From Pavona decussata (Eukaryota), in assembly GCA_977016875.1 (NCBI GenBank), contig CDRNST010000057.1:2232001-2296000 (forward strand): DNA of 64,000 nt, given 5' to 3'. The translations under genes and the position numbers were made by a program. This document shows, piece after piece, positions 7,074 to 32,851 of the stretch; the first letter of the stretch is position 1, and each line of letters begins with the position of its first letter. The notes under the pieces are model-generated. The model was not told the origin of the DNA, made no database searches, and saw only the letters and a program-made list of their open reading frames with translations.

Positions 7074-7407
7074 TGTATACCATGTAATTTAATTAAGAAC
7101 ATCTTAAGAACGTTTTCAGAAGAACGTTCAGCCTCAGCTCCAAAATTGAACGTTGTTATAAAAAAAACCGGAGGGTACCAGTATTCATTTTGTTTTCCTT
7201 TTCAACTTCTAATTTTGTAATCCCAGTGGAGAGCAAAGAACAATAGCTCTAATTAGCATGAGAAAACAAAAACCAGAAGGATTCTGGTACAATAGTTGTA
7301 GTAAAATGACGCCATAGTGTAACATCGTGAAAGTGCGGTCTTATCATCAGAGCTTGAAAACACACTTCCTTCGGTAATACATTCATGGAACCGAACGTCG
7401 TGTCTGT

Positions 7408-7535
7408 NNNNNNNNNNNNNNNNNNNNNNNNNNNNNNNNNNNNNNNNNNNNNNNNNNNNNNNNNNNNNNNNNNNNNNNNNNNNNNNNNNNNNNNNNNNNN
7501 NNNNNNNNNNNNNNNNNNNNNNNNNNNNNNNNNNN
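7408..7535. other. Assembly gap (N run)
   Basis: Run of Ns. Confidence 1.
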
Positions 7536-7819
7536 GCCGCTTAATGTCAAAATACTTTAACCTTCATAAATCCAAGACATTTCGGCGGAACTTCAGGTAG
7601 TCCATAAAGAAAGATAAATACTTGTCGAGGGTGGGGAGGGCAATTAAGAGATCAATGCTTTCAGAGTCAGTGGGAGTTTTTTCACGTCTAAATGTATAGT
7701 TCCATCACATTGGACAGCAGTTTGTACTTTATTTTTCAATAAAATATTTACGGCTATATGTACAATAATTACCAAAATTATGAAAAAAATAAAATATTAC
7801 CTTGTTACTCTACCCCCCA

Positions 7820-7939
7820 TGTTACCACGTGTCGAATCATGAGTTGTTTTGGTTCCAGTTTACGGAACGGGAAGCTTTTGCGCGCGCCAGTAACATTATT
7901 TCACATTGCCATCTTCGTGCGTGGTTTTTGAAGGTAAGA
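7820..7939 (+). promoter_or_regulatory. Putative CpG-rich promoter and non-coding first exon of the small 125-aa gene
   Basis: Local CpG cluster, CGGAA/GGAAG and GCCATCTT (YY1-like) motifs, strong donor AAG|GTAAGA after 7933. Confidence 0.5.
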
Positions 7940-10740
7940 TCTAGTGTCTTTTTTGTTTATACGCTAATATACATTGTCCTTAAACTAAGACGTGCAGAAA
8001 CTCTTTAAAAAACGAAAAATCTGTTGACACAGTTGTCCGGCTTTGAATTTTGAGCTTCCTTCAAGATCGATGTGCGTTTTGTATGTTTTAACCACGAAAA
8101 GTTTCTTTACAGCAAGGACTTATATTAGTGCCACTTTGATCATAGTTTTTAAGTACTGAAGTTATTTTAATGCTAAGATACCCCAGAACGCTAATTGAAG
8201 CTGATATTTTTATTTTTGAGGGCACTGTTATGCAAGCAAATATAAACAGGCAGATAAGCTTAATGGCAGTCTCCGGCATCCGTGCCGGGCGTTTTTCCGA
8301 CATTCAGAAATTCTCACACAATTTCCACAAATATTCTTATTTAAACCTTCTGAGAGTTTTGATTTTTGTTTAGAAATACGAAACGGTACAGTGTATAAAC
8401 AAAATTTAGCTTTGTCTGTAATTACATAGCCGGTTATGCCATGAGCTGGCGGTATGGCAAACGGCAGAAATCACACAACCATCTCCCTGTTTTCAGTTAT
8501 CATCAAAAGGTAGAATTTTTCTGCCTTTTTTCAAGAAAACATAAACGCCAACTTCACGTTTGCCGTTTGCTGTAAACGCAATTCTAAATCCCTCTGATAT
8601 TATATTAAGGTTGCGTTGTAGACGAATAGCTTCGACGCAGTAAGCTTATGTAAAATCAATACGTTCTCTGGTTCTCGACAGAGAAAATTTGTGGTCCTAC
8701 TTGGCCAAAACTAGACAACCTGCATGCAGTAAAAAACTATTTCTGAATTTTGTGCAAAATTCACGTTCGTCTCCTGAGAGCACCTTATTATTATACTGAG
8801 AAAATGAACACTTGTTGTTTATTTATTTATTCATTTAGTTTTATTCATTTGTTTATTACAATTTACTGGCTGAAAAATTACTAAGCGAAGAAATGTGTTG
8901 TTCCAGAAAATATCCATGCTCCCCCACCTAATTCTACGGCTCCTCTTCCCCTTCTCGAAATCCAATTTAGCTTCATACATGAACATTTCTATTTTTTGTG
9001 GCCTTTGAGACCGCTCACCCCCTTCCTCCCCCTGCCCCCCTCCCCCACATACTGCAGTTTCCAATCCCTTGTGTGTGTTTGGGGGAGGTATCAGACCTGC
9101 CAACTCGTCCAGTTTTCCCGGGAGTCTCCAAGTTTTTCATCAAATCTCCCGGACTCCCGGTTATAGCACCATGCAAATCTCCCGGGAAATGCCTACTGTG
9201 GCCTTTTTCAAATTTTTTTCATTAATTTCATTATTTTCAAGATGTCAAAAAGGAAAATAAAACAAGAGGTGGATTTAGTGGTCTTATTTGAGCTGTTCTC
9301 AATCCGAAAATGTAAAACAGAGCAATTAAATAATGAGTATCATAATTGGTCAGAAATCAATCAATCAAATAATTATTGCACAATACATGGTAGGTAAATG
9401 GTGTTCTGACCAAGAGACGTCAGGAACATTCGTAAGGCCTTCGGGTGACATTCTTACAATGCAAAGGTTTCTAGACATCTCCAGATATTTGTACTGGGGG
9501 TTGGCAGGTATCATGGTATGAACTTTTGTGACCTTTTGAGACCCAGCTTGGAATTTCCAATCCCTTCTGTGTGTGGAGGGGGGTTGGGGTAGGGGATGGT
9601 GTGATATGGATATTTTCTGGAACTACACAATAACAAAGTTAACACAAGCAATAAGAGTGCTCCATGGATGAGAAAGTCACAGATAGAAAAAAGACCACCA
9701 AAATACAAACATACATTTAAAGAAACTGAAAGCAAAACTAAACAGGTTAAATAAAGGCCAGTTTCCACATGCAATTTTTGATGCAACTTTTGTTGCATTT
9801 CAGGGCAATTTTTCTCACCCAAGGCTGCAACTTCAAATCACAGGTGCAAACCAGCTGCAATATTGTAGTGACTAAAAACTTGCATTAGAAAGGTCCATTA
9901 AAATTGCACAAAATTGTATACATGTGTAATTTATGGGGCCTTAAAAGTATTCCATTAAAATATTTCCTTCCATCATCTTGTACTTAAAAGTTCTTACACT
10001 ATGTAGCCACTTGTGAAAGTGAATTCAACATTTCTGCAAAGTTCACAGTTTAAAACAAGTACATGTACATTTGAATTTAGTCATCCTTAGCTAGGAAAAT
10101 TCTTCCTGGAAGTGAATAATTATATAGCTTGAAATAAAGAAACTTACATGTAAATGCAAATGAGAAGGCTAAATTTCCAAACAAAAAGAAATTAAAGCCA
10201 AGTAAGGAGGTTTTTTAGTCTATCAAAATAATAATAATAATAATAAGAAGAAGAAGAAGAACATTTTGATAATAATAATTATTACGAAGTCATTAATATT
10301 ATAACCTTGAAAAAACTGAAGGAAATACTGCAGAGACAGATCAGACGATTTTTGATATGATAGCAAGAGTTAGAAAGATTGAAATATTATGCTTAACACT
10401 AGAAGGCTGCTAAGTACTGTTATGGTTTTTTTGAGTTGTCCGTACCCAATGAATTTGGATTAGAAAGAATTAACCTCCAGGAATGGGTATGGAATGCCCC
10501 ATGACTGTCACATACCAATGTTTATTATAATTTGGCTTAAATATCATGTCTCAGACATTCAAAGCCTAATGCATTCATTGGTGATTTTAAGAAGTGGCAT
10601 TGTTTCAAATCCTGTTGAAGCCTTCAAAATGGAAATTTCCGAGGTCTATTCATAAAATTGTTGTCAGTATCAAAAGAACTGTCCATTGACATTGATTTAA
10701 ATTGTGCAGGAAAATAAACTTGTTGAGCAAGAGGGTTAAG

Positions 10741-12306
10741 ATGTCACTGTTGCGAAGAGGACATCAACTGATCTTAGCACTCACAATAAGACAGTCAAGC
10801 ATCAGATGTTTTCAAACAGCACCAGTAGCTATGAATGCAGGCCGAACTCAGGATGGATTCACAGGTAAATGCAGTGTACTTAGCACCTTACAACATGTTC
10901 GGGATGATGTAGATTGTGAGTGTCTGCATGGTTGCTGAATATCCTGCACCGGTGTGCCACATTAATGAGTCAGTTTACGAGAATTTAGTCAGGACTGAGT
11001 CACGATATACACTGTACCACCCAAAGACTGTTAAGGAAATGTTGGCCACTAGACTGTAGAGTTAGCACCATAGGCACTCTACCTCTCCTTCTCTCCACCC
11101 TCTTGGTTCTGGATCCAAAAGTAGTCTGGTTTAGATAGGGTCAACTGCCACAAGTTTCTCAAAGCATTTGCTTTGTCAGGGATGTATAGTTAAGAAAAAC
11201 TCATCAGGTTCATTAATATTATTAATAAACACTGTGGGATAATTTGGACTGTGCACCTTTAAAATTAGCCTGGTGTATTATTTTGTGTTCTGTTGAAATT
11301 TCAGCCGGTGATAACATCTCTTTCAGATGGTGAAATTCACCCGTATCTGCATGGCTCTTTATAGCATCATCCCTGCTTTGTAGATGACAACTGCACAGAT
11401 ACAAATTTCTCTTGGAGCCAATTTATAACTCTTAAACTGGTTTATTTACAACATCATGCACATCAAAAGTGTTTGTACCACCTTAAGTTAATATGAATAC
11501 TTTTATGCAATGTGATGGACAATTCAATCCGAATTCTAGGATGCTGGCTAAAAGGCCTTAGACCCAGTGAGGTGACTGTCACACTCCTGCGTATCATGCC
11601 CTGCTATAACTGGACTACTGCGTAGTCATCATTTCAACTGGGCTCACACATGTACATGTAGGGGGTTGCTATAACACAAAAAGTTAATCTTTAGTTTGTT
11701 TTAATTTTTGACTAGGCTTGGAAAACTGCTTTATTTGGGATGACAAGCACGGCTTTGGTTATGACAAAAATGGACAAGTTGTCATCGTAACACCAAATAC
11801 ATCCAATGCAATGAGCCAAACGTTCAGCTCTAATATACTCAGTAATGGTAAGTTAAAACAGGTCATTGCATTAGTTAAATAATTATTATGATTCTTCTTC
11901 TACCAGTTTTAAATTGGAAAGTTGAAGACTCTGCTTTCGAAACACCCGTTTCTTTCTCAGTGATTGTGCAAAAGTCAGGTACATCTACAGGGTAACCTTG
12001 AAAATTGGCACCATTCAGCACCCCCAGTTGCAGTTCATAGATGGTTGAATTATGTCACATGCCTCTTGTTTTCTTCAAGAGAGGGTGTTGATAGTTAGTC
12101 AACAGACTTGCAGGGGAGCTGTTCTTCAATTTTTCCAAATTTAGTCATCCTGGGCAGTCAAGTAATTATTGGTTTCCCTTTCAGGACCAGGGTTGGAGAA
12201 TTTGTCAGAACTGGAGCACGAGACCCCAAAATTGGAGAAGAGACTAGAATATGAGAATGATGATGATTTTGATGATTATCCTACCTGCGCAGGAGGGAGA
12301 GCCTGA
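10741..12306 (+). CDS. Unannotated small protein (125 aa) with predicted mitochondrial presequence; coding exons 10741-10864, 11716-11847, 12185-12306
   Basis: All introns GT-AG and phase 1 (ACAG|GTAAAT, ACTAG|GC, AATG|GTAAGT, TTTCAG|GA). The joined frame is open: MSLLRRGHQLILALTIRQSSIRCFQTAPVAMNAGRTQDGFTGLENCFIWDDKHGFGYDKNGQVVIVTPNTSNAMSQTFSSNILSNGPGLENLSELEHETPKLEKRLEYENDDDFDDYPTCAGGRA*. Upstream acceptor at 10709/10710. Confidence 0.78.
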
Positions 12307-15013
12307 TTAATCAAGCCCTGAGCAATAAGATGGGCAACTGGCCTGAACATGGGCAAGGCTTTAAATTCAAATGCATTGAGTGATCTTTTCTTGGCTGCAT
12401 TTGCTAAATATAATGAAAGAAAAATGGCTGCAGATAGATCGATCACCTATTAACAATTTAGTCTTTTTATCATTAATCTCATCATCATCTTTCATTTTCA
12501 GTTTTACAAGTCTGATATCACGTCTGTATCCATTTCCATCATCTCCAGTTATCTATTGAAGATAAAGCATAATACTGCTGGCAGGATTTATGTTTTGACT
12601 TTTGGTGTTAATAAGTTAAGAATATAATTTGTCCTTATTCAAAACATGGCTGTGATTTTTAAAATTGGTTTGTTTGCCAAGAAATCATCATTCAATAGTT
12701 GTTATCGTCTGAAAAAGCTTTGTGGCACTCAAGTTGAAGTACATGTAGGAAGAACTTAAGTGTGATTACTCCATAGCGCTTTTCATTCACGCTTTTAGTC
12801 TTACAGTATTTTTTGCAAAACGAAAAACATGGGATTTTTTAATATATATTTAAGGGAAACGTTGATGAGAGTAAAGCCAGGAAGCTTACCTCATGAAATG
12901 AAGCAACTTTTACTGAATTGCATTTACAAGTAATAGTATTTTACTTAGTTTTGAATCAAGTGTGTACAGAAAACAGTAACAGTAATTGTTATCTTGTACA
13001 TTTATGAACCAGAACGCATTAGCTTTGCAATCTCCACTGCACTGACATGTTTTAGAAACATGTACATTTGATTAATGTATGTAGCATATTCTTGTAGTGT
13101 AGAAAAATTAGATTTTCTCAGAAAACATTTTTATAGATCGTGAAATTCAATTTAAGAAACTGTGCTAGTTGATCCAGAATTATTTATTGTACATATATTT
13201 CATTTCTATCCATCATTTTACTGCTAATAAAATTAGCTTTGTACAGTTTTGATGTTCAGTCAACTTGTCCTTTATTTTCTCTTGGATCTTAATTACATGT
13301 ACCTCTGGGAAAAAAACAAGTCATCCACATATCATTTCTCTGAAAAAAGTTCAGATGGCAAGATAAATACGTCGTGCATGTTGTAGAGTTTGGGAATTGA
13401 TACCCTGTGAGCAGAGTCAGTGCCAATGTGCTGCCTTCCACAAAGAATGTTCTGCTTCCTGAAGAGGGTTAGTTTCTAGAGAAACTGTGGTGCTGTATCG
13501 GTGGGGAGTAGAAACGAATGTTTGGTTTAATCAACAAAGTTGAAGGGTAATTTGGCCACTGTAAAGACATCTGAGTGCTGATGCTTGGAGCGATAGCCTT
13601 TTGTCAGAGCAAATCCAAAGGGCTAACGCTCAACTGCAGCACATGAATCTTTTTATAGTGGACAAATTACTTTTCCTTATCAACATTGTTGCTCAAACCA
13701 AACATTTAATTTTGATTTGTTTAACAATTTTTCTTTTATCCGAAGATTAATCATAAGCTTTAACTTCTAATCATAATTTTTAAAAAAATTCAGAAGACAA
13801 GACTAGGCAATGAAAGTGAGTTTTGAAACTAATTATTTTCCAAATTGGACCATACCAAAAATTTTTACATGATTGTATGTGAACTATATTATTTTGCAAA
13901 GGACTACCCTAAAGCCTTTTAATTTTGCAGGGGTTAGAATTATTTTGCAAAAATCAATTAAAATTTGATAGTTAAATCAAGTAAGATTTTTTTCAGAGTA
14001 TTTGCAGACACTCTTCCAAAAACAGTGTTACTGAGAAAAGTAAAAAAATGTCCAGTACAAAAATGTAGTAGTTTTAGTGAACACCAAACATACAGACTGA
14101 CCACAAGCACATCTTCTTTGAATATGATGTACATTCCTATCCAGCATCATTCATTTTACAGCATGCAAGAAAGTAACCCATGCAGCAGTATTGTCCATGT
14201 GTGAGTGTCAAGTTTTGGTGGTGAAGCTATGATACCAAGTGGTGTAAACTGCAAGAAAATGATTTCAAATCACCTTTTCCGGATTCCCCTCATGACTTCA
14301 CTGCTCATTCGTCCAACTTTCATCTTCGCCCAACAAACTACCAGCCATGCAAGTGAGCAAGTGAGTAATACCTTAACATCATGTCCCATTATAAACATGA
14401 ATATTCTCCCCACTCTTCACATACAGTTCTTATGGTACTACTGAAGAGAATTTCTTATTAAAACAACAAAATTATTGACAGAAATCTTTCATCACTTGTT
14501 ACCATTTTCTTCTTCTAATCATTTCGGATCCCTTCTTCTCAAGATATAATTTTATGTTTGATACTGAAAATAGAACTTAGCTGCTGATTCACATTGGGAC
14601 TAACAGGCTTAAAAAGATTGGCAGATTTTTATTTTGTGACAAAAGCAATGAAATTGAATGCCATGCAAAAATAAAGGGCTCTAGCATGCACAACTAATTA
14701 CTACATGTATGCAAACAATATTTGGGAAATCATTTGGACATTTCATGAATGGGACTGAAGTTCACTACAGCACCTAACTATAAATTAAATCAAGAAGTCA
14801 AAACATGTCTTGAGCTGCACAGTAAGAATCACCACTACAATTCGCAGTCTGTTCACTTTCAGAGACTTGACTTTTTCATCACTATGAAGTTATAAGAATT
14901 ATTAATATAAAAAGTATTTTCCTCTTGGGAACTGATTATGACCTAGCTATTAATGCCATTTCGCCTTGACCATTCCAAGCGCTGTGGCGTTGAACTCCCA
15001 CTTGTAATGTAAA

Positions 15014-18000
15014 CTATCTTTGTCCTTTTTCTGGTGTCTTGTAAACTGGCGCAGTTGATTTAGGAAGGGGAGGATTCCCTAAGATAATATCAGCTGCCTT
15101 TTCAGCGATCATAACAGTGGGTCCATTAAGATTCCCACTCACAATACTTGGCATGATTGATGCATCAACAATTCTCAGATTTTCCACTCCCATGACCTCT
15201 GTTTTATTATTGACGACAGCCATTGGATCATCTTCAGAACCCATCTTACATGTGCATGATGGATGGTAAGCAGTATCAGCATTCTGTCTAACCCAAGCAT
15301 CAATTTGTTCATCAGTTTGAACATCATCACCTTCAAAGAAAAGAATGGCAAAAAATGGGTCATTGTTGAATAACAACATTTTTACAATAACTGTCCAAAT
15401 TCCCGCGCGCTGATTGGCTCGTAGCTATTGTCTATAAGAGTACAGACAATAAAAATGACGTCAGATGTAACGCGCGCGCTTTCTCAACGAAAAAAATAGC
15501 CAATTCCGCTCGTGCTTTTTCCATGTTATTGTAAAAAACAAATCGACGGCAGTTTTCTATGGTCTATACTCTTATAGACCATAAAATGACGCCATAAAAT
15601 GTCCAAAACTTGGCAGTGAAACCACTTGCCTGCGGCTCGTGGTTCCACTTGTGTTTTGAACATTTTTTGACGTCATTTTATGGTCTATAAGAGTATAGAC
15701 CATAGAAAACTGCCGTCGATTTGTTAAGTATATCTGTAGTTCTCAAAAAATAATAATACAGTATTACAAGATGATAGATAGCCCAGCACTCCCCTGACAT
15801 GTACTGCTGCCATATTTGTGGGGTATGGTATAATGGCTCATATACCACGGCCGCTAAACCAATCAAACCTCTAGAACTGTGTTATCCAATGGGTCAGTTT
15901 TGAATAATTACATGACTCTTTTTTTTTCTGGCTTATAATAAATAAATGGGTCATCAGTCAATAGCAGACAATTTCTTTTTTCCAATACATAAATATTAAA
16001 ACAACTCATGAGTATAAACACTACAGTTGATTCCATCCTGTCGATTATTTAGTTTGCATGGATCATATTTCTATGTGATTCATGCATACATACACATAGA
16101 AATTTGTTTAAACACTCAATCAGGAAACAGGAAATCGTTATCAATGGTGCTCCATCCACTAAATACATGTAGATACACAAAAATAATATCAGAGAAGTCT
16201 TAAATGATTGTCAATCAATCTTATAAAGGTTAAATTGGGTAAAAGTAAAAAAAAAAGTAAATGCTTTGGTTATAGTGGAAATAAACTTAGCTACCCAATG
16301 CTAGTTTACAGGCATTCCACTCAGTGGAATACCTGTGGTGCTTTGCTGACGGTATTTAAAGACAGCCCCTCAGCATTTTATCAGCTTTTCTTAACAATTT
16401 GACAGCATTATACTGGCAGCCAGTCTTATGATCATGCTATTCTTATAAAAAGCATCACATGTAGATAACATGTACAGCTTCCTGGTCACATTCTCATGAA
16501 CCTTTCTCCCTCTCATGAATCCCTTAAAATCCTAACAGCATTATTTGTTACTAGATGACCCTGTTACACTATCCACCACAAGGGGAATTCTCACTTCTCA
16601 CCAACCGTTCTCCATCCCCCTTCCCCCCCTCCCCCTCCACCACTAACCTGGCTGCAGTTCTTTTCCGCGGAATGGATCAAAAGCCTTTTGACTGAATATT
16701 TCTCTTGTCAGGCGAACAGAATCCCTTAACTCCACTCGATCTTCTTCTGTGGATAAGTAGTTGGGGTTTATGATGGGATGATCATAGGGATTCACTGACT
16801 TTAGCTTTACGTATCCGCGACTTGTGGCCCGCATGGAACCAACATGTACCTTGAAAAGAAGATTGTCTTGAGTAAAAATAAAAATCATGAAGATTCAGAG
16901 ACAATATTAATTTAAACTGAGGTGGGAAAATATACAAAGTCATGTAAACTGCCTTATGAAAGACTTGCATTAGAAAGACCATCATTATTTTTTACAAAAT
17001 TAATTACCACACAATTGTCTAAATTACAGTTAAGTATCCTGTACCACATTCACTTAACAGACTCACACACTCATTGAGCTGTAAGCTGTAAACATATGGG
17101 AGAGAAAGAGGGACGATGTACCTTCTTGCAAATGTTTTCAAATTGATTCAATTTAGTTTGACATGAAATGATGCAAATGTACTTAACACCAAATCATACA
17201 ATTTGTAGAAAACAACATTACATAACCCAACCCTAAAGATGCTTTGCTCATACCTGAACCCCTGATGAGCAACTGTGGACAAGCTTGAGGAAATGTGCCA
17301 CTAAGACTTTGTAAGAAACTTTTCAGAAATACTTTCTAGACCCAACAACATTACAATGATGACCTACTTGAAAAGCTTCTTTCTCAACAGTAACTCTGCC
17401 ATGATCTTTAAAGGCTGAAGGAAGAAAGTGGTACTGGATGTTGGGATGAGAGATGCCCTCTCTGGTGCGAATGAAGCCTCCAGCCTCAAGATGTGCAGTG
17501 GCACATGGCCCGGTTCTTGTGAGGAACCACTTGACACCAATAGGAATCATGTTCCACCACTTGAGTGAACGATACAAACTTAATGGCTGGGTGCATTCCT
17601 GAAAAATGTCAAAACAGAGTTAAGCTCTGGCTACTAAATTATTTAAAGGCATTGTTGTCTTCCTTAACTTGGACCCACTCAGGTTTTAAAACCCTGTGGG
17701 GGCAAATACCATGAAAGTTACATACATACAGGTACATGTTGTCACAGTGGAAGTGCCTTGAAGATCAGAACAGACACCTTCATAGCAGGGTGTCCACAAG
17801 GAAAATGTTTACTATACTACAGGGAGATGCTCTGCTATTGAACCATTAAACCATTTACTAGGTTCAAATGACATCTGTCTCACATACTGCTACGATCTGG
17901 ATTCATTTCAATTCCAATAATTTATATTCTTTCTTTCATTTCAAATCTTTGCCTTTCGAAATCCCTTTCTCCCTTGACATTTCTAATAATTGGGGGGACC

Positions 18001-20949
18001 ACATAATAAATACAATCAACATATAATTTACCACTAAATGTAGGACCTCAAAGAAACAGAAACAAGCAAACAGATCAAGACCACAACCATCACAACCCAC
18101 AAAAAAATGTGACTTTAAACTCTCCTGAACTAATCTTCCTTGTCTACTATAAGAAATGGCGAAAGTGAAAATGTTCGTTGATATTTCAACTACAAATTCG
18201 TACAGTTTGTATACAGCTGAGAGAAAACAAAATGCACTCAGACCTGGTGAAAGTACATCTCCAAATGATCCTGTAAGTTCTGCCCTACACCTGGAAGATG
18301 AACCTTCACAGGGATTCCAAGCTTCTTCAAATCATCTGCATTTCCAATGCCAGACAAGTTCAGTAATTGTGGTGTGTTAATAGCTCCAGATGTTAAAATA
18401 ACTCCCTTTCTTGCCCTTACACGTTTAAATTGATTTTGGCAGGTGTACTCGACACCTATAGCTTTATTATTTTCAAATACTATTCTGAAAATCATTGCTT
18501 TTGTGTCTGCTCGAAGGTTACGTCGCTTGAGCGCAGGTCTAAGGTAGGCATTGGCTGTATTCCATCGTATGCCTTTGTGGATCGTCATGTCCATCCAACC
18601 TAACCCCTCTTGTTGATAGCCATTCATGTCTTCTGTGAAAGGATAACCAGCCTGGACACCGGCATCAATAAATGCTTGATACAGAGGGTTGTCTGATTTG
18701 CCCCGTGACACATGAAGGGGGCCATCGCCTCCTCTGTAATCATCTGGACCTAGTGGGATAATGACAGTAGTAATCTTAATATAAATTAAACAGAAGAAAG
18801 GTCCTCACAGTCGTTTGTACAACTTATTAAAGCAGTTGTGAAAAGAAACCTAAAAAAATTCAGGCTTGAACGGGATTCAAACCCATGACATCTGTGATGC
18901 CAACCGGGAGCTGGTCATAATTATTATGAGTTCTCAGAATATGAGCAGCTCCCAGTTGGCTTGATAGCTCAGTTGGTAGAGCACTGTACTGGCATCGCAG
19001 AGTTTTGTTTTGACGTTGTCACTCCCAGGGGTCCTTAGACCAGTATACCCATCATACAATGATGTACACCAGTGAAAAGAGAGACAACATGAAGCAAAGT
19101 TTGTGGGGCTATTTCGTTCAAAATTCTTACCCAACTCGTGCGTCTGCGATTTCCTGAAGTAAGGCAAACAATCAGCATATGACCAGCCTTTAGCTCCTTC
19201 CTTTTCCCAGCGATCATAATCATAAGCATGTCCTCTGATGTACACCATGGCATTCAAAGATGACGACCCTCCCCAAACTCTCCCTCTAGGCTGATAGATA
19301 CGCCTACAAAAGAATTTGCTAGCCATTTATATTTTGTCTGTCAGTGAGTTAAAAGCAGATTACTAACAGTCTTTTTTTTTCATGTACTCTCAAAGAACAT
19401 GTGCTACCTGGAAACGCATTTCTTGATTACTTTTTTTACAAAACTATCATTGAAACATATTAATTCTTCGTGGCACCTGCAGGAGCAACCATCAAAAGTC
19501 CATGCTCTTCACACATTGAAATCCAAGATGAGGCAACAAAAAGGTGGCACTAGAGCCTATATGTCCTGATGCAAACATGAAATCAAGGGAGTTTGAGAGA
19601 CTGTTATTATCACTTCATGTGAATCCAGAAAAAACATTAAGCATGCAATCTCTTTTGTTTTTAAAGTTTACCTATTGTCCATAAACTCTTGTGGCTCTGT
19701 TTCATAATACCAGTTGTATTTGTTATCACAAAGGTTATAAATAAGAGCTGCAGGCATATGGATTTTCCACGTCCAATCTTTAGGTCCAGCCTCCAGCAGA
19801 ATAACTTTGTTGTCAGGGTTTTCCGACAGACGATTTGCTAGAACACAACCTGCTGAGCCTGCTCCACAGATCACATAGTCATGGGTTGAAGAGAACTTCA
19901 TTGTGGATAGGAGGCATTTTTGGTGGAAATTAGGTTGATGACCTGAAGGGAAAAAAGGAACAGCTCATTACAGGGGATTAATGCATGACTTGATTGAGGA
20001 TCACTGAATATGGAGTCTTCGGATGTATTCGGAAATCTTCGGATAATTTTATAGTCGTGTCCTTTTTGGAAAATCCTGGCACTCCCAGGTTTAATATCTC
20101 ATGCCTTTGAGTCAGAAAACGTTGGCGGTATACTATCAACAAAAAGTAAATTCCTTGTTCAATTCAAAGACATTTGTCCAGAGAACACTCCCATGAATCT
20201 TGAGAGGGTATTTCTGTTCATGACAACAAAAATTAACTTAAATGTCATAAATAATAAAATTAATTTTTAACTATTGAAATAAACTAAGCAAATACAGCCA
20301 TTGTTAATGATTCTAACAGCCCATATTTAAAACAGGATTCAGCATTTGGGGTAAAAATGACAGAAATAAGTGTCCTCAAAATCAATGCCCCACTTAAGTC
20401 ACAGAAATTCTCAAACCCACCAATAATTCATGAAGAGAAAACAAAGGAAATCACTACCATGAAGGAGGTTTGGAAATGTGATCTTAATTATCATAAAATT
20501 TGGTAAACTTTTGATTTGAATTTCTCCAATGATTAAAAATGGTTTAAGAAGGCATATCAAACACTACAAAGAGCGTTTCATCTTTTTTCAAAACACCTTT
20601 TAAAAGAACTTGCATATCATTTTCCAATCCACTTCTTGGTGTTTGGAAATAAAATAAAATAAAAACTCTTCATTGTGTTTGGTATATTAAACTCCAAGTA
20701 ATAATTATTTACCATTTTTTAAATTTGTGTTAATTTCATGGAACAAATTAATTTCCTTTTAATAAAAAGCTGTTAATATAAAATTTGAAAAAGTTGAGAA
20801 ACATGTCAACAGACATGCAATGAATCAATATTGTTCCATGAAACAGCAAGTAAAGAGAAAATTCATATCATGTACTTGCCATTTATTATACGGAGTGCTG
20901 GAGGCAGACTTTTAAAGGAGCATCTTTTTATAAGCATCAAGGAAGCCAT
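15014..20949 (-). CDS. CHDH: Choline dehydrogenase, mitochondrial (GMC oxidoreductase), paralogue A, 589 aa; coding exons 20949-20880, 19942-19672, 19303-19131, 18749-18244, 17598-17368, 16849-16648, 15330-15014
   Basis: FAD-binding [35 protein letters not shown], catalytic YHPSCT and GNLN, as in BetA/CHDH. Exon phases are consistent (1770 nt). Basic Ser/Leu-rich N-terminus [20 protein letters not shown]. The first coding intron needs a GC donor. Confidence 0.95.
15537..15725. repeat. Long hairpin (foldback) repeat in the last intron of CHDH-A
   Basis: AACAAATCGACGGCAGTTTTCTATGGTCTATACTCTTATAGACCATAAAATGACG and its reverse complement ending at 15725. Confidence 0.8.
18800..19002. mobile_element. 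tRNA-derived SINE fragments in opposite orientations (CHDH-A intron)
   Basis: A-box-like TAGCTCAGTTGGTAGAGC (~18965) and reverse B-box GGGATTCAAACCC (~18872). Same family as 39990-40138. Confidence 0.7.
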
Positions 20950-24582: not shown

Positions 24583-27500
24583 ATGTACGGTTATGTCAAA
24601 AGGTTTGCTACTTGTGCCGCACAACTGTCTAGGAAGACACTCTCATGGAAAGCAAAAGGTAAATTTTTAAAAATGACATTCGGGCTTTGTTCCCTTTAGC
24701 CTTCCTCGCGGACGCTCTTTTGGCGCGCGACGAGCCCAAAAGAGCGCAGTACGAGAGAGGCAGCTACCGATCAGTTTGAAACTTCAACATTAATACTACC
24801 TACCCCCGGACACTAGTGCTTTTGGCTTGTAAAAATCGCCACCCCAGGTTGAAGTTTTAAATTGATTGTCACGTAAAACATTTGGAATCCATTTTTCACG
24901 CATGCTATTAAACCTATAGAGCCACGTTATGGTCCATAAAAGGCATGGTTTTAATTTTGAGCCATTTTCATCAGAAATACCCGAGTTTGTAGGGTTCAAA
25001 GAGCTGTCAGGGGCCGTCCAGACTTCCCAAAAGAGGGGATTGTCAGTCAGCATGAACTTTCATTTGTGGGGTCAGGGGTCCAAAACACACCGGAAATTGG
25101 TGAAAAGAAGGTTTGTAAAGGGGGAAATCTGGTAATTGTAACTCCTGATAGTAATTAGGGTTGCCCCCTACCTTCTCCCACCCTGTGCAATTCCCAGGGG
25201 GAGATACTCGGGTATTTTTTTTTTTTTTTTTTTTTTTTAACAGCTTTATTGACCATCACACATGTTAAATACAATAAATTAAACAACTAGAAAGAAATGA
25301 AAAATACGTGAAAAGTGATAAGGTCAAAAGGGCAGGTGCGAACGGGACGCGAGGACCCATGCGAGGCACCTCCTTACGTGACTGGGGGTCCGACGTATTT
25401 TTTGGGTCTAAAATTTTCAACTCCTGTATTTTTTGGGTTTGAATTTTGCCAGGCTTATAGTTCTTACACAATTCAAGCCAAAGTTCCCGCAAGATCCAAA
25501 AGCATGATTCAAATAATCTGCATGTAGTTCCAGTCTTGCATTTTTTAGGGCTCCGTCACCCCCTTCCCCCCCCCCCCCCGTCACATTTATACCCGAGTAC
25601 CCCCTGGGGTGCAATTTTGGTCTGGAAAGGGTAAGTGATTTTGAAGGAAACCTTTCCACTCTTGAAATAAAGTAACGTCAAATTGTTGAAAATACAAATA
25701 TTAAGGAAACCCCGGTGAATTCACCGATTTTTCTTTTCGTCCTTAACCCTACTTGGGAGCCTAAATTTTTGGTTTCAAATTTCCTGAGGGGCGCTATGTT
25801 GGATATTTTTCATGGCGTAATATATTGCTCAATTCTTTCAGCAACCATATGACATACAAAAAGTATAAATCCAAAATGGCAGTGTGCAGGGGTTTTTTGT
25901 AATAATTTGAAAACTTGCAACAATCATATCTAAGTTTTAGCACACTTGAATGTTATTTCTACTTTTCAAATGAAAATTTAAAATTTCAACGATATTTCCA
26001 ATTATTTAATGTCAATTTGTGGCTAGACTTCTAATATCCCTCACACACACAATAGCAGCCACAAAATAAGAAAAACTTACTAATATTACTTTTTTGGATT
26101 CAATCTCAACTAGCATTGAGAAAAAAATGCTTCAACTCAGTACGGTCAGCTTCATCATTTTCTTCAACCCATGATTACATCATTGTGGGAGCAGGATCAG
26201 CCGGATGTGTTCTGGCAAACCGCCTGTCAGCCAATCCAAATTCAAGAGTGCTTCTTCTTGAGGCTGGACCAAATGACAACACTTGGAAAATCCACATGCC
26301 AGCAGCTATGTCATACAACTTAGAAAATGACAACTACAACTGGTTCTATACAACAGAACCTCAGGAAAACTTGAAAAACAGGTTAAACTGGCTTTTTTTT
26401 CGTGCATTTCTAGTTATTTAGCATCCCCAAAACTGATGCACATCTCTGATTAAATTAAACAACTGCAAAGAATGTGCCTTACCATTCTCTTATGTGACAA
26501 CTATTTTTCACAACCTCTTAATATAAGTCAACCTTATTTGCAGGGTCTTTCTTTGTAATGCTGGGAACAAGTGAAGAGAGACAGGAAATGAGAGCTAGGG
26601 GAGAGTTGGGGCGGGGGGTGGGGGATGGAGGGCAAAGGGTAAAACAGCAAAATAATATCTTACAATTATTATAAAATTTTACATGACAAGAAGAAAGTGG
26701 TGTGTTAGCCAGCAAGAAATTCTGAGCTTGGAGGCATAGAAGGTTGGACACTCATATGCATTGTGCATCAATGTATCAAATGAGAGGGTCCCCAGCTTAT
26801 TTTCAAGACAAAGACACGAAGGGCTGAAAAGTTTTTAAATTCTACCTGAATATTTTCACATTGAATCTGTGGGCTCAACAATCACCATACACCCTGTCAG
26901 CTAGATAAAAAAGAAACAGTGCCAGACCTGCAAAGTCCTAAATTATCCTTGCTGCCTTCCAATACAGCCTGCCGTGACCATTTAACATTCCAGTGTCTGA
27001 TTTAGACTTGTGAAAAAAGAACATTACCATCTAAATGAAAAGGAAGGGCAGAGCTAGAGGGATAAGGTCTTAAATTAAGAATATATATTTGTGAATGTGT
27101 TTTGGTTTGAGCCTCCTCTCCTCTTTATACTTGTGTTTCAAACTCAGGTTACCCTTCCTCCCTTCGCAATTTCCAGTGCTTTTTCTTGGGCTGGGTAAAT
27201 TTTCTAAAAAGCATGCAATATTATGTTTTTGATCCACTTTTAAGATAAAGGTGGGGGGAGGGGGAGCAGAGTACCCTGGGTCTATGCCTGGACTCCCTTC
27301 CCTCCCCGCCAACCTAAGTTAAGACCTTAAACGTTTTGATCTACAAAGTTATTAAGGTTAGAAAATCCTCATGGGATAAATTATTTAAATGATATAGCCT
27401 GTGAAAAGGCTCCCAAGTGGAGTATAAAGCAAAGAGAAAAATCTAGCTTGGTCCAGACCATGCTCATCTCGTTTCACTCGCCAGTTTTTCTCTTCCCGTA

Positions 27501-30500
27501 TGCCCCACTGTTGGAGCCTGTTCACAGGCTAAAATAATATTGCCTCCATTTCAGAACTATGTACCACCCGAGAGGTCGAGTGCTAGGTGGTTCCTCATCC
27601 ATAAATGCAATGATCTATGTTCGAGGACACGCCTTGGACTATGACAGATGGGAAAAAGAAGGAGCTTCTGGATGGTCATATGCAGACTGTCTGCCATACT
27701 TTAAGAAATCTGAGACTTTTGAACTTGGTAAGTTTGTTTTGCAATGCATTTTGTCTGCCTTGGTAAATCTACACTGGTGTCAAGAAATGAGAATCATTTG
27801 AACTTGGAATCTCTTTGGTGAAAATGCTGACTTCCTGTCCCTTAGCAATCAGGCACGTGAACTTGGTATGCCTGTGGCCTTATGAAAACTATCAGTACCT
27901 TTCTTCACATAATCTGGGTAACCCTGTTGTCTTGCCTCAATCTGGTGTTTCTGTGGTCTTATGCAAACTGCCGGAAATTAATGTTATACAAACTACTTAT
28001 GTCTGTAGACCAACTATACTGTAAAGCGTGGCTTACTGGGTGAAACCAAAAACCAATAAGATTGGTCATAGTGTTTTTGCAACAGCCATATTGGAGGAGC
28101 GAAACAATAGAATGATTTTTTCTTTGGGAAATATAGTTATTTTTATGCAAATATTTTTTTTGTTTTGTATCTCTAACATGGCCATCGTAAAAATACTCTA
28201 TCGTGTGGTCTTATGAAAAAACGAAGAAGCCTGGTAAATGAACGTGTGATCCTCAGCAAGCAGCCCACTGGCTTATGGTTGGTTATAGCCACTGTAAAGA
28301 GATGCAAAGGCTGACTTTTCACGCGCCAGTCCCTTTTCTATCTCTTTCAGGGTTGGCTAATTTAGCTTATCAACTTTGTTGAACAAACCAACCATTCCTT
28401 TTTTCCCCCACCGACGCGGTACCACAGTTTGTTTATAAATACAACCCTGGCACCCAACAACTTAGTTATACCAAATTCATTAGTTTTCTGACGAGGGATT
28501 CGTGCAGAATGTCCAGCTTGTTTAATCTGGGGTCAAAGGCAAAATTAAGGACCTTACAATTAGTAGGTCTGGCGGTTGGCCCAGAAGAAAAGGATCTGAT
28601 TATGCGTAGTTTTAGCTAAGTGGAGTGCCACGTAAAATAAAGTTCCAAGTTCCAAGTGTCCGTTGGGTTTTGTCAGTACGTTTATCATCCCAATATCTGC
28701 GCGGTCCGAAAGCGAAAAACGCACCAAATGCCAACGGAAAGGCTTGTTACGCAGGCTCTCAGCCTCGCTCGTTTAACCAATCCGATGGCAGAATTCAGTT
28801 TGTATGGAATGCGCGCCGACTGATGTTGAACACCAAATGGGCGCGTGGAGAAATGCCGGTCTGTGGTACCCAGAACACATCGACTGTTGTCGCTGTTGTC
28901 TCGTTTCCTCCAGCTTTAACAATCGCACTTGCAGTGACTCCAGTGCAGTGACTCTTTCAAAATATCAACACTTGCTTCTCTCCTCAGGTGCCAGCCAATA
29001 TAGAGGCGGAAATGGCCCACTGCACGTGTCACGTAGTTCGTCTTCGCACCCTCTGCATCAGGCCTTTTTGGCCGCTGGGGTTGAAGCTGGTTATCCCTTC
29101 ACTGAAGACATGAACGGTTATCAACAGGAAGGAGTTGGCCGGCTGGACTGCACAATACATAACGGGAAAAGATGCAGTGCGGCCAGGGCTTATCTCAAAC
29201 CTGCATTTCAACGAGAAAGCTTAACCATTGAAACAAGGGCATTGGTAAACAGAGTGCTGTTTGAAAACAAGAAAGCGGTCGGCGTAGAGTATCGCATTGG
29301 AAACGCAACAAAATGCGTGAGAGCGTCTAAAGAAGTCATTATTTGCGGTGGTGTGATAAATTCTCCTCAACTGCTGATGTTGTCTGGAGTTGGAGATGCC
29401 CATGAGCTGAACAGATTGGATATACCTACAGTGGCTAACTTACCCGGAGTAGGAAAAAATCTACAAGATCATTTGCAAGTCTACATTAAATATGTAAGTA
29501 TTTTTAGTAAAGAGGCGAATAATTCACATAAAAGATGCCCCTGTCGAAATGAGCTAAGCCATGAGAAAATAAGGCGGGCGGAGAGGAAAGATAGCGCGTT
29601 GATTGGCATATGTGAATTTCACTCGAGTATATTTAGATGCTGTTTAAGACGAAAGACTATTCCCCGTGACGTGATGGCGAGGCATGGTAGGGTTGACAAT
29701 TGTCGTTCAAAGTAACTGAGTCAAATTTGACTCCTCAGCGCCCTGTGAAACCTACCAGCGGAAGCACTTGCCACGCAAACTACAGTTTGAATTTCCACTC
29801 TGATCAAGGGACTGATCACCGGATCACCCACTGATGCGTGCGGACCTTTCGTTTACAAAACTTCTAAAAGTGTAGTCAGTAGAGAAATTCACATAGTAAT
29901 AGTAAAGGCTTTATTTATAGAGGGTAACACTTGGCAGTAGTAAAATCACTGAGAAATGCGTGGCCCCCATATCCCAAGCGAGGTCTAGAATGGCGCGGGG
30001 CGACACCGTCTCCGCTGTCTCCGTCCCCGTCCCCGTCCCCGTCCCCGTCCCCTGTATTTTCTCAGGGTTCATACGGGTCATTAAAAACATGGCAAATCGT
30101 AGAATTTTATCATTTCATGGAATTTAAGTTTGAGTCATGGAAACTCATGGAAAATAATGTTACGATACAGAAAGAAAGAAAGCATTCTTTTAGGTGATGA
30201 AAAAGCACGAAGATTAAGAATAAAAAAAGAAGAGGTTTCAAGAAACAGATTTATACTCAGTAGAAATAAACAGTTCAGTTCGCATTTTGACACTGTAGAA
30301 TACGAACGCTTTGTCAAGGAAAACTTTGAAAAGGTCATAAAAAGCCATGGAATGTTAAAAGCCAACTGAAGAGTACGAACCATGTTTCCCTTGGCTAAGC
30401 TCATCACCCCATTTTTTTCCTTGTTTCTACCACAGCAATGTCTCCAACCAGTGACACTCAACAGTACATTTAAACTACACAACCAGATCATGGCAGGAAT

Positions 30501-32851
30501 GAAATGGTTTCTGTTTAAGGGAGGAGTTTGTGCGTCTAACCACCTTGAGACTGGTGGATTGATCAAAAGTGACTCAAAGATCTCGCACCCGGACATACAG
30601 ATGCAGTTCTTACCCTTGTTTATCAGTGAAGCAGGAACAACACCGGCAACCCAACACGGATATCAGGTACGCGTGCGTGACTGGCAGTGCTGATCACAAC
30701 ATTGAAAGACTATTGAACTAAAGTCGTGAAGACACGAAGGGTATGGGGAGGGGGGGGGGGGGGTTGGGGAGGGGGAGTTAATTCGTGGTGGGACTGCTGC
30801 TTGCAGAATTTCTTGGGACCATTTTTCAATTAAGACTCGCTTCCATCTCTCAAACTGATATTGGGCATTCACTTAAATTTCAAACTTAAGAGGAAAAGAG
30901 GGAAAAGTAGAATAGTGTAAGCCTCGAACCTGACTCGTTATGTCTGCTTCATTCCTTCTATCGTACGTTAACCACTACACCAACGAGGACTAGCTGACGC
31001 GATTGTAATTTTTAATATATTTATGTAGAGTTACCCATCACAATAAACGAAAGCAAACCGCTTTCGAATCAGTGCTTAACCCTAAATACTGCAAAGATCG
31101 GTGCTAAGCCCCAAAATGATGTTCCTTGTCTAGCTGGAGCTCTATTCACTCAGTTCTCTGCCTAATAAATGGGCTTGTTCTTGTGTCATCAGGTCACGAC
31201 CGTCACATTCGTGAACGGTTACCAAGCGTGGTCGAAAAGTGGTCCCAAAATATATTTTTGCCTGATGCTTGTTTCGATGTTCCGCCAATTTACAGCAGTT
31301 TTCAATAAGTGTCGTAGAAAAAAAACCAAAGTAATTACTCTGACCAATCACAGCAGACGTAAGCAACACAAAGAACCAATCAGAACTCGAAGTAAATGTG
31401 TGTACAGTAACCGGCGCCAAACGCGGAAAAATGCGCGCGAGAAAGTCACGTTTTGTTTTGGTTTTGCTTCTCTTTGGCTGAGAAGCTTTGCAAGGAGAAT
31501 TGGTAGCAAACGCGAATAGCGCACTGAAGTAATCTCAAATGGATTAAGGAGTTAGTTTCTGGGATGCTGCTGTCGGTGGGGAGTAGAAATCTCCTTCACT
31601 CTAACGCAGGGCTAACGCTTGGAACGTCAGCACTCGGATCTCTTTACGGCAGTCAATTTACCTTTAGTTATTAACTCTGTTGATAAACCAAACATTTGTA
31701 GTAATCTCACCCCGCTTATTTTTCTCCCTCCCCTATCTCTGATGTGTCCGTAGTTGGCAACGATTGTGACAAATTCTGCTTTATTCTCTGACCATTTCAG
31801 CTCTGTGTTGAGATCCTGAGACCGACCAGCCGAGGTTTCATCAAGCTGAAGTCACGTGACCCACTCACGCATCCCGTCATTCAACCAAACTATTTGTCAA
31901 CCGAGAGCGATCGCCGGCTGATGAGGGCCTGTGTCCGAGTGGCGCGTCACGTGCTCAGCCAGAAGGCCTTGGAACCTTACAGAGGAAAAGAGTTGAAGCC
32001 AGGTTTGTAGTCAGCCGTTTGTAAGCGTACAAAAACGGACGGTGAAAACAGAAGTTTTTGAATTTATTTCCTTGTCAGGACTAAACGGGGCGCAACTCAC
32101 AACTGTGAAGCAAGTCAACCGACACAAGTTGGTTTCAGTATTGTTTAATTTATTATCGGCTGGACACTTAAGGCTGCGTGTTGATTTGGCAACTTGAATA
32201 ATCCAGCATTACCCTCTGAACAGGGGTTTAACGCCCGGGGTTACCTACAATCCATGTACTGACTTCCGAGGCAGCTCAAAACTCGGTGTAGGTCACGGTT
32301 TTCAATTCCAATTTGATCTGGCTAGTGTCCTCAATTAGTGCTCTGCGCTAAATTCATTGACACTTAAAATAAAGTGATTTAATTTTATTTTTTATTTGTC
32401 TAAATGTCGTTTAAGTAATTGGCGTTAATCTTTTTCTGCGTAAAACTAGCTGATCAGAGAGAAGGCGCAAGGGTTCTGCTGACTACTTTGTTGTATATAG
32501 TAACGGATGTTTTGTAACGGAAATGTTTATTGACGTCGTTTTCGTTTAGGTGATAACATTAAAACAGAAGAAGAAATAGACGCTTTTGTCCGAGGTTACG
32601 CCAAGACAGATTACCATCCCTGTGGTACGTGCAAGATGGGAGCCGAGGATGACCCGACGGCTGTTGTCGACAGCGATACGCGAGTCTTCGGTGTGGACAA
32701 TCTTCGGGTTGTGGATGCGTCTGTCATGCCTAGTATTGTCAGCGGTAACCTTAATGCGACCACTATCATGATTGCGGAGAAGGCAGCGGATTGCATTTTA
32801 GGTGAGGCGTGTCTGCCAAAGGAACACGTGCCAGTGTACGGTCTTTCCTAG
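24583..32851 (+). CDS. CHDH: Choline dehydrogenase-like GMC oxidoreductase, paralogue B, 585 aa; coding exons 24583-24658, 26114-26381, 27555-27727, 28988-29493, 30436-30666, 31801-32002, 32550-32851
   Basis: Same motifs ([32 protein letters not shown]). Internal exon lengths 173/506/231/202 are identical to paralogue A. Frame open over 1758 nt. N-terminus [30 protein letters not shown] is presequence-like. Confidence 0.93.
25193..25608. mobile_element. CCC..GGG-ended MITE in CHDH-B intron 1, interrupted by a poly(T) retroposon tail
   Basis: CCCAGGGGGAGATACTCGGGTAT ... ATACCCGAGTACCCCCTGGG. T-run at 25215-25238. Confidence 0.55.
30006..30052. repeat. (CCGTCC)n microsatellite
   Basis: Tandem hexamer; source of the SPSPSP in ORF 29931. 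Confidence 0.9.

Follow-up and report, generated by a model that had tools for sequence, protein, structure and literature searches.

A small gene in the Pavona decussata window, the 64,000-nucleotide stretch of DNA analysed here, is real, spliced and expressed. It has four exons, three of them coding, and is an orphan gene restricted to hexacorals that has been predicted before in other species. The interpretation considered rather likely is that this nuclear gene encodes a protein with a mitochondrial presequence and a largely disordered mature part that docks by a hairpin, the adjoining choline dehydrogenase (CHDH) gene being a syntenic neighbour only.

Gene structure and expression

The transcript consists of the following parts (window positions):

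7869..7933, + strand: 5′ UTR exon; joint 7933>10710 found in runs X1, X6 and X7; the 5′ end is approximate, as the contigs start near 7869-7874
10710..10864, + strand: first coding exon; ATG at 10741, 41 codons plus 1 nt, ending in phase 1, GT at 10865
11716..11847, + strand: second coding exon; phase 1 at both ends, AG at 11714-15, GT at 11848
12185..12306, + strand: third coding exon; AG at 12183-84, stop codon TGA at 12304-6
12307..13250, + strand: 3′ UTR; joined without a break to the coding sequence until at least 12708 (X5, X7 and tiling contigs); its end is uncertain, with unstranded contigs continuing towards the convergent CHDH gene

Exon coordinates, splice sites, phase-1 junctions and the stop-free frame are all as originally predicted. 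Both coding introns are of the GT..AG type and lie in phase 1, and the frame is made up of 41 codons, a split Gly codon, 43 codons, a second split Gly codon and 39 codons, giving 125. The 5′ UTR exon has an in-frame TGA at its end (7929-31), just before the GT donor at 7934. This stop codon closes the frame upstream, and the ATG at 10741 is therefore the first usable one. The junction context of the 5′ UTR exon, ttgaag/gaaa (the slash marks the joint), is common to an orthologue transcript (L010). A candidate poly(A) signal for the small gene, AATAAA, is present at 13226-31.

The first coding exon specifies a basic, acid-free, presequence-like N-terminus with an R-C-F motif. The second encodes the conserved core of the family, C-F-I-W-D-D-K-H-G-F-G-Y-D-K-N-G ... 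V-T-P-N, and the third an acidic tail with the C-terminal end Y-P-T-C-A-G-G-R-A; the core and tail motifs quoted in the original prediction are found in these translations. Only the first exon had appeared in the list of open reading frames. Its frame of 78 aa is above the list's 60-aa default cut-off, and those of exon 2 (54 aa) and exon 3 (45 aa) are too short for it.

At the RNA level, the joints 7933>10710, 10864>11716 and 11847>12185, which had been named as the check on the gene model, are all present as GT..AG joints in spliced contigs from runs X1, X5, X6 and X7, belonging to four studies. One contig of 702 nt covers all four exons. The joint evidence is far beyond chance. Fifteen RNA-like runs contain ~0.11-0.21 of the words sampled from a 1.7-kb stretch in which the exon share is 0.24; that these runs are RNA is a tool's guess, strongly favoured by the spliced contigs. 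An apparent further joint at 13397 is merely sequence that continues beyond the end of the compared stretch.

A search of the species' own genome finds the gene as a single copy with no paralogues. Rfam and repeat scans of positions 7600-14000 gave no matches. Upstream of the 5′ UTR exon, the window has a run of N at ~7404-7550.

Orthologues and conservation

Searches were made with the exon peptides one by one and with database orthologues, in place of the joined 125-aa model. The exon-2 peptide gave 19 matches at E<=1e-3 in a representative search (best E 1.1e-12), and the convincing ones are small proteins. Members come from Pocillopora, Porites, Orbicella, Oculina, Desmophyllum, Nematostella, Exaiptasia and Actinostola; all are annotated as uncharacterized and range from about 105 to 145 aa. 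By sequence comparison, the small gene is an ortholog of the group that includes Pocillopora damicornis LOC113669251 (XP_027041052.1), Nematostella vectensis LOC5521414 and Exaiptasia diaphana LOC110242199. The orthologues resemble the window protein in size class, in the basic N-terminus with R-x-[F/L/I], in the core, in the intron positions and in the variable acidic tail.

The matches are confined to Scleractinia and Actiniaria, in keeping with the proposed lineage restriction, within the reach of searches that overlook strongly diverged relatives and unsampled ones. When the profile word search was repeated with 17 sequences, no further taxa appeared. The gene had been described as hidden. 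Strictly it is not, as orthologues are already deposited as predicted proteins in at least 8 other hexacoral species, although the Pavona decussata protein itself is missing from the word-indexed protein collection, where the exon-1 frame found no candidates. A literature search on the orthologue locus ids and the core motif found no papers. As it stands, the gene is an ordinary uncharacterised orphan and would not surprise a specialist.

The family has an acid-free, Arg/Ser-rich N-terminus, a core of ~30 residues and a variable acidic tail. The core follows the motif G-L-x-x-C/G-F-x-W/Y-D-D-K-H-G-F-G-F/Y-x-K-x-G-x-x-V-x-V-x-P, with which the exon-2 peptide agrees, and the invariant or near-invariant core columns of the alignment are Q, F, G, L, F, D, K, H, G, F, G, G, V, I, V and P. 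The positions of the two coding introns are shared by the window and the Pocillopora, Porites, Orbicella, Nematostella and Exaiptasia loci. Three coding exons are characteristic of the family, as is a first coding intron that interrupts a Gly codon just before the core; both are found here. The closest full-length relative, P0042, has ~68% identity over the aligned exon parts. Among the members, only P0042, P0045 and P0047 share the Y-P-x-C-A-G-G/S-K/R end of the window protein.

The small gene is under purifying selection. Exon by exon, dN/dS against three orthologue transcripts is 0.28, 0.29 and 0.23, and two hexacoral orders share the reading frame, the core motif and the intron phases. A conserved frame in related species is what the original prediction had required of the gene. 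The Pavona decussata genome gains a verified and expressed gene model from the analysis, which also defines a compact, hexacoral-restricted orphan family with a clear motif, a conserved gene structure and, judging from its N-termini, a likely mitochondrial address.

Structure and resemblance to known proteins

An AlphaFold2 model built from a 17-sequence alignment has a mean pLDDT of 50.7, which is too poor for a fold search. It shows no secondary structure apart from a hairpin in the core. The core of ~30 residues is predicted to be one beta-hairpin, and the variable acidic tail is predicted to be disordered, a reading of a low-confidence model on a shallow alignment.

The original statement that no family could be recognised is borne out: Pfam at E<=10 gives no family for the three exon peptides, four orthologues or any of the 17 aligned members. 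At the motif level (aromatic-D-K-D/N-G-x-V-V), the core hairpin resembles RHS/YD repeats, SdrD B-like repeats, the GLGF-loop region of PDZ domains and the SAICAR synthetase signature. All four likenesses are below significance, and the family has a single hairpin and no domain. The RHS/YD repeat (PF05593) was rejected for lack of a Pfam match at E<=10, with one motif copy and an atlas score of only 0.78. For the PDZ domain, the PDB profile match is to the ARHGEF11 PDZ (E 0.13 over ~29 residues), again with no Pfam match, and one hairpin compares poorly with a fold of 80-90 residues. The SAICAR synthetase match is to Thermotoga maritima PurC alone (E 0.04 over 39 residues), with no other PurC of the PDB matching and no Pfam match over the ATP-grasp-like domain. 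ESM Atlas look-alikes of exon 2 and P0042 have scores <=0.90 and low recognition, and yielded beta-helix and RHS leads only, which do not count as evidence. Among the matches of the representative search, the long bacterial proteins P0013, P0015, P0016 and P0017 consist of SdrD_B, Ig-like or BACON repeats and score by the sum of weak repeats, and P0006 (1497 aa) belongs to no Pfam family and is not matched over any one stretch; none of the five is counted as a relative. The likeness of the core to RHS, SdrD_B, PDZ and PurC is treated as chance or as a generic beta-hairpin resemblance.

The N-terminus and proposed mitochondrial function

A textbook presequence is devoid of acidic residues, is rich in Arg, Ser, Ala and Leu, and has an R at -3 before an aromatic or aliphatic residue. 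The window N-terminus has this Arg/Ser/Ala/Leu-rich composition, with a net charge of +5 and its first acidic residue at position 38; it is thus acid-free for 37 residues, as first noted. In each of the 15 members tested, residues 1-35 carry a net charge of +4 to +9, without any Asp and with one Glu at most. Acidic residues first occur at 32-48 in 14 members and at position 10 in P0045. The R of R-x-[F/L/I] is near-invariant: in every aligned member it falls in one and the same column (K in Porites lobata), with F, L or I two residues on. In the window the sequence is R-C-F followed by Q-T-A, which agrees, as a sequence pattern, with an R-2/R-3 processing site. The maximum helical hydrophobic moment of the N-termini is not above that of shuffled controls (p 0.04-0.5, in a crude test). 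Of the mitochondrial targeting originally proposed, the basic N-termini (15/15 net-positive) and the near-invariant R-x-[F/L/I] stand, but amphipathicity is not significant; on composition, import is plausible.

The preferred interpretation may be set out as follows. The basic, acid-free N-terminal 25-35 residues would act as a mitochondrial presequence, which the matrix processing peptidase would cut at the conserved R-x-[F/L/I] site. This would leave a mature protein of ~90-100 residues, largely disordered. The ~30-residue hairpin motif, its sole conserved element, would most likely bind a larger mitochondrial partner by strand addition, with the variable acidic tail remaining flexible. Known proteins of comparable design are small nuclear-encoded accessory subunits or assembly factors such as NDUFV3 or SDHAF4, with a cleavable presequence and a largely disordered mature part. 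The likeness is one of overall plan, in which a presequence is followed by a single short conserved motif and a charged, flexible tail; there is no sequence similarity, and membership is not claimed. By analogy, the small protein probably works like these small mitochondrial proteins. Mitochondrial microproteins restricted to particular taxa hold some interest for the study of energy metabolism and stress in corals, and this family can be approached experimentally through its members in Nematostella and Exaiptasia, in which localisation and knock-out work is standard.

A possible but less probable alternative is a conserved small protein of the cytosol or nucleus, disordered, whose basic N-terminus is kept for some other role, such as nucleic-acid or partner binding. 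The shuffled-control result is consistent with this, as is the N-terminus being fairly well conserved among stony corals, above many presequences. Against it, the textbook presequence pattern is found in every member, from corals to anemones, despite the divergence of N-termini between the two orders.

Choline dehydrogenase neighbours

The small gene is convergent with a choline-dehydrogenase-type gene, as predicted, and a second gene of this type lies further along the window:

15014..19901, − strand: convergent choline-dehydrogenase-type GMC oxidoreductase (exon ORFs only); GMC_oxred_N/C, best NCBIfam model BetA
26116..32851, + strand: second choline-dehydrogenase-type GMC gene (ORFs); GMC_oxred_N/C, best NCBIfam model choline dehydrogenase BetA

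Animal CHDH is mitochondrial. This, the fit of the neighbours to choline dehydrogenase models, and the same tail-to-tail pairing in Pocillopora damicornis, Porites lobata and Orbicella faveolata as in Pavona decussata speak for a small protein dedicated to the adjacent enzyme, as its partner or regulator, within a choline/betaine cluster. The pair, however, belongs to a wider conserved block, in which a GPCR lies upstream (Pocillopora, Porites) and a LIM gene downstream (Porites and the Pavona decussata window); the adjacency is thus explained by ordinary microsynteny. In addition, neither Nematostella nor Exaiptasia has a GMC gene within 10 kb of the orthologue. Synteny with CHDH is therefore kept in the three other stony corals but is absent in both sea anemones, and the functional cluster of the original prediction is not supported. 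A dedicated CHDH partner is very improbable, the neighbouring gene is probably a mere syntenic neighbour, and gene adjacency alone does not justify a claim of binding.

A broader form of the proposal is a hexacoral-specific mitochondrial microprotein that would act as a hairpin-docked accessory subunit, assembly factor or regulator of a mitochondrial enzyme or complex; in stony corals the enzyme might be the adjoining choline dehydrogenase. This too is improbable. If true, a CHDH-docking microprotein would be a lineage-specific control point for the production of betaine, an osmolyte and methyl donor, in reef corals.

Other readings of the small protein

It is most improbable that the protein is a secreted peptide precursor with a weak signal peptide, a bioactive core and a C-terminal amidation-type end (Gly-Lys/Arg). 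Some complex-clade tails do end in C-A-G-G/S-K/R-x, and the Pavona decussata N-terminus has a 7-residue apolar run. The apolar runs of the members are, however, of 3-7 residues and are broken by Arg in all of them, short of the signal-peptide core of ~8 or more, and anemone N-termini are plainly not signal peptides. Furthermore, the core has neither flanking dibasic sites nor repeated peptide copies, and robust-clade corals lack the C-terminal motif.

A non-coding transcript or chance frame, which the shortness of the ORF, the absence of a known domain and the low-confidence structure model might suggest, is effectively refuted by the conservation of frame, core motif and intron phases, by the dN/dS of 0.2-0.3 and by within-species variation, which is lower per length in the coding sequence (5 sites in 375 nt, 3 of them synonymous) than in the 3′ UTR (at least 35 sites listed in ~1.1 kb).

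Gene structure and transcription

The microprotein gene is a real gene, an orthologue in an already predicted, uncharacterised family restricted to hexacorals. The original prediction of a hidden gene holds as to the gene, but not as to its being hidden, as orthologues are on deposit as "uncharacterized" in other hexacorals. Its features, read from the window sequence at 10500-12500, are as follows.

10708-09, + strand: AG acceptor before the first coding exon
10741, + strand: start codon ATG
10865 and 11714-15, + strand: GT donor and AG acceptor of intron 1 of the coding part
11848 and 12183-84, + strand: GT donor and AG acceptor of intron 2 of the coding part
12304-06, + strand: stop codon TGA

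The splice sites and stop-free frame are as predicted: borders are GT..AG, the split codons G+GC and G+GA both specify Gly, and all three exon bodies translate in frame with no stops, giving 41+1+43+1+39 = 125 codons. The ATG at 10741 is the start codon because the upstream 5′UTR exon closes with an in-frame TGA at 7929-31. The ORF track displays the first exon only, as had been observed; its ORF is 78 aa (>60 aa), and those of exons 2 and 3 are 54 and 45 aa. Further 5′, a 30-codon ORF starts with the ATG at 7839 and extends to the TGA of 7929-31 (window 7839-7931). This ATG may be 5′ of the transcription start, and contigs begin at ~7869-7874. There is a run of N at ~7404-7550.

Contigs of four sequencing runs from four studies were aligned to window positions 7570-13400. 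All three predicted junctions are present, since exact GT..AG joints are found at 7933>10710 (three runs), 10864>11716 and 11847>12185 (both in four of four runs). One 702 nt contig (run X7, record 21) joins the 5′UTR exon, all three coding exons and some 3′UTR. The RNA label of the runs is a guess by the tool, and the splicing is hard to explain unless the runs are RNA. Fifteen RNA-like public runs (five studies) contain 0.11-0.21 of the sampled words of a 1.7-kb stretch whose exon share is 0.24; four other runs, from one study and of unstated kind, contain 0.75-0.88.

Two intronic regions have unusual contig coverage. A 43-nt piece of intron 1 (11284-11326) is common to high-depth contigs (depth up to 269) whose flanks differ from the window on either side in each of the four runs. 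The piece probably comes from an element located elsewhere that is repeated or highly expressed. In the large 5′ intron, contig-covered segments at 8545-9714 show odd skips (8913>9609 and others), and Gly/Pro-rich peptides with MDIFWN.T at their end are common to the ORFs at 8831-9103 and 9511-9822. These segments resemble copies of a repeat or transposable element that is transcribed; with a seed of 12, the repeat finder detected none there.

Protein family and constraint

Queries throughout were exon peptides or database proteins. Pfam gave no match to the exon peptides, and the exon-1 ORF found no candidates in a word-indexed protein collection. A genome search shows the gene to be single-copy. 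A phmmer search of 1.84 billion representatives with the exon-2 peptide gave 19 matches at E<=1e-3, the convincing ones being proteins of 63-155 aa with the same core. Members were named by cluster look-up and two profile searches: Pocillopora damicornis, P. verrucosa, Nematostella vectensis, Exaiptasia diaphana, Actinostola, Desmophyllum, Oculina, Orbicella and Porites lobata. None of these searches found a member beyond Scleractinia and Actiniaria, in keeping with the predicted lineage restriction. All named members are labelled "uncharacterized", "hypothetical" or "unnamed", none has a Pfam domain, and a literature search on orthologue locus ids and the core motif found no mention. The long matches P0013, P0015, P0016 and P0017 were rejected as relatives, being bacterial SdrD_B, Ig-like or BACON repeat proteins whose scores add up over weakly matching repeats, as was P0006, which has neither a Pfam family nor a single matched stretch.

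The family has an N-terminus of ~35 residues, with a nearly invariant R, F/L/I two residues on and a Ser/Thr/Ala-rich stretch; a core in which Q, F, G, L, F, D, G, F, G, G, V and P are invariant and K, H, V and I near-invariant; and a variable linker followed by an acidic tail. The tail encoded in the window, with Y-P-T-C-A-G-G-R-A at its end, is shared only with the database proteins P0042 and P0045 and with Porites lobata. Both coding introns are at identical protein positions in Pocillopora, Porites, Orbicella, Nematostella and Exaiptasia. Exon-wise dN/dS against three orthologue transcripts is 0.28, 0.29 and 0.23, with dS partly saturated. Family conservation, shared introns and low dN/dS, together with splicing, establish a protein-coding gene that evolves under constraint.

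Among the contigs, five of the 375 coding bases vary; by codon reading, three of these variants are synonymous (11747, 11768, 12297) and two nonsynonymous (10775 Leu>Ser, 12284 Thr>Ser). The ~1.1 kb of 3′UTR has at least 35 variant sites. An X7 contig omits 174 nt of 3′UTR (12325-12500); the ends are non-canonical (TA..TC), and two other letters, CG, lie between. This looks like an indel allele rather than an intron.

Putative mitochondrial targeting and structure

In all 15 N-termini tested, residues 1-35 have a net charge of +4 to +9 and lack Asp, and Glu occurs once at most. The first acidic residue is at position 32-48 in 14 of these (position 10 in P0045), and apolar runs do not exceed seven residues in any. 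By composition, these predicted N-termini are of the mitochondrial presequence type, not the signal peptide type. Matrix-processing-peptidase sites include an R-3 class, which the conserved R-x-[F/L/I] fits. The proposal of a mitochondrial protein is favoured by these properties, but a crude hydrophobic-moment test gave values not above shuffles; import is moderately probable.

An AlphaFold2 model from a 17-sequence alignment, with the closest full-length relative P0042 as first row, has a mean pLDDT of 50.7 and shows no structure other than a short hairpin in the core. The mature protein is therefore read as probably largely disordered with one hairpin motif; speculatively, this motif would dock onto a partner.

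Profile searching of the PDB matched Thermotoga PurC at E 0.04 and the PDZ domain of ARHGEF11 at E 0.13, and the atlas gave RHS-repeat clusters (0.78). At E<=10, none of the 17 family members matches a Pfam model of these families, consistent with the prediction of no characterised family. All three values are below significance, and a single PurC sequence was matched in PDB. These likenesses are treated as generic hairpin-motif resemblance.

Choline-dehydrogenase-type neighbours

Exons of two neighbouring genes best fit choline dehydrogenase (BetA) models.

15014-19901, - strand: GMC oxidoreductase (CHDH-A)
26116-32851, + strand: GMC oxidoreductase (CHDH-B)

The microprotein gene is convergent with CHDH-A, as originally described. 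Coverage by the unstranded contigs runs on past its CDS toward CHDH-A, and places the transcript 3′ end only approximately. Candidate poly(A) signals, AATAAA at 13226-31 (microprotein gene) and TTTATT at ~13273 (AATAAA on the - strand, CHDH-A), lie no more than ~50 nt apart, with unbroken coverage across them (window 13180-13400). The two 3′UTRs may abut or overlap.

A functional cluster with choline dehydrogenase had been proposed. The microprotein(+)/GMC(-) pair is indeed retained in Pocillopora damicornis, Porites lobata and Orbicella faveolata, but in these genomes it is part of a larger common block, with a GPCR gene upstream in Pocillopora and Porites and a LIM gene downstream in Porites and in the window (40661-40927). 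In addition, Nematostella and Exaiptasia have no GMC gene within 10 kb of the orthologue. Ordinary microsynteny among stony corals explains the adjacency, and a functional link has no specific support.

The Pocillopora damicornis locus (L002) has a second, divergent GMC gene downstream of the orthologue (13667-20933). Its annotation is a single product of 1159 aa in which two GMC_oxred_N/C sets occur, so that the model has either fused a tandem pair or captured a genuine duplication. In the window, two long + strand ORFs at 34036-35839 separate CHDH-B from the LIM array; a reverse-transcriptase domain is present in the second (RVT_1, E 7e-18), and the region is a non-LTR retrotransposon remnant.
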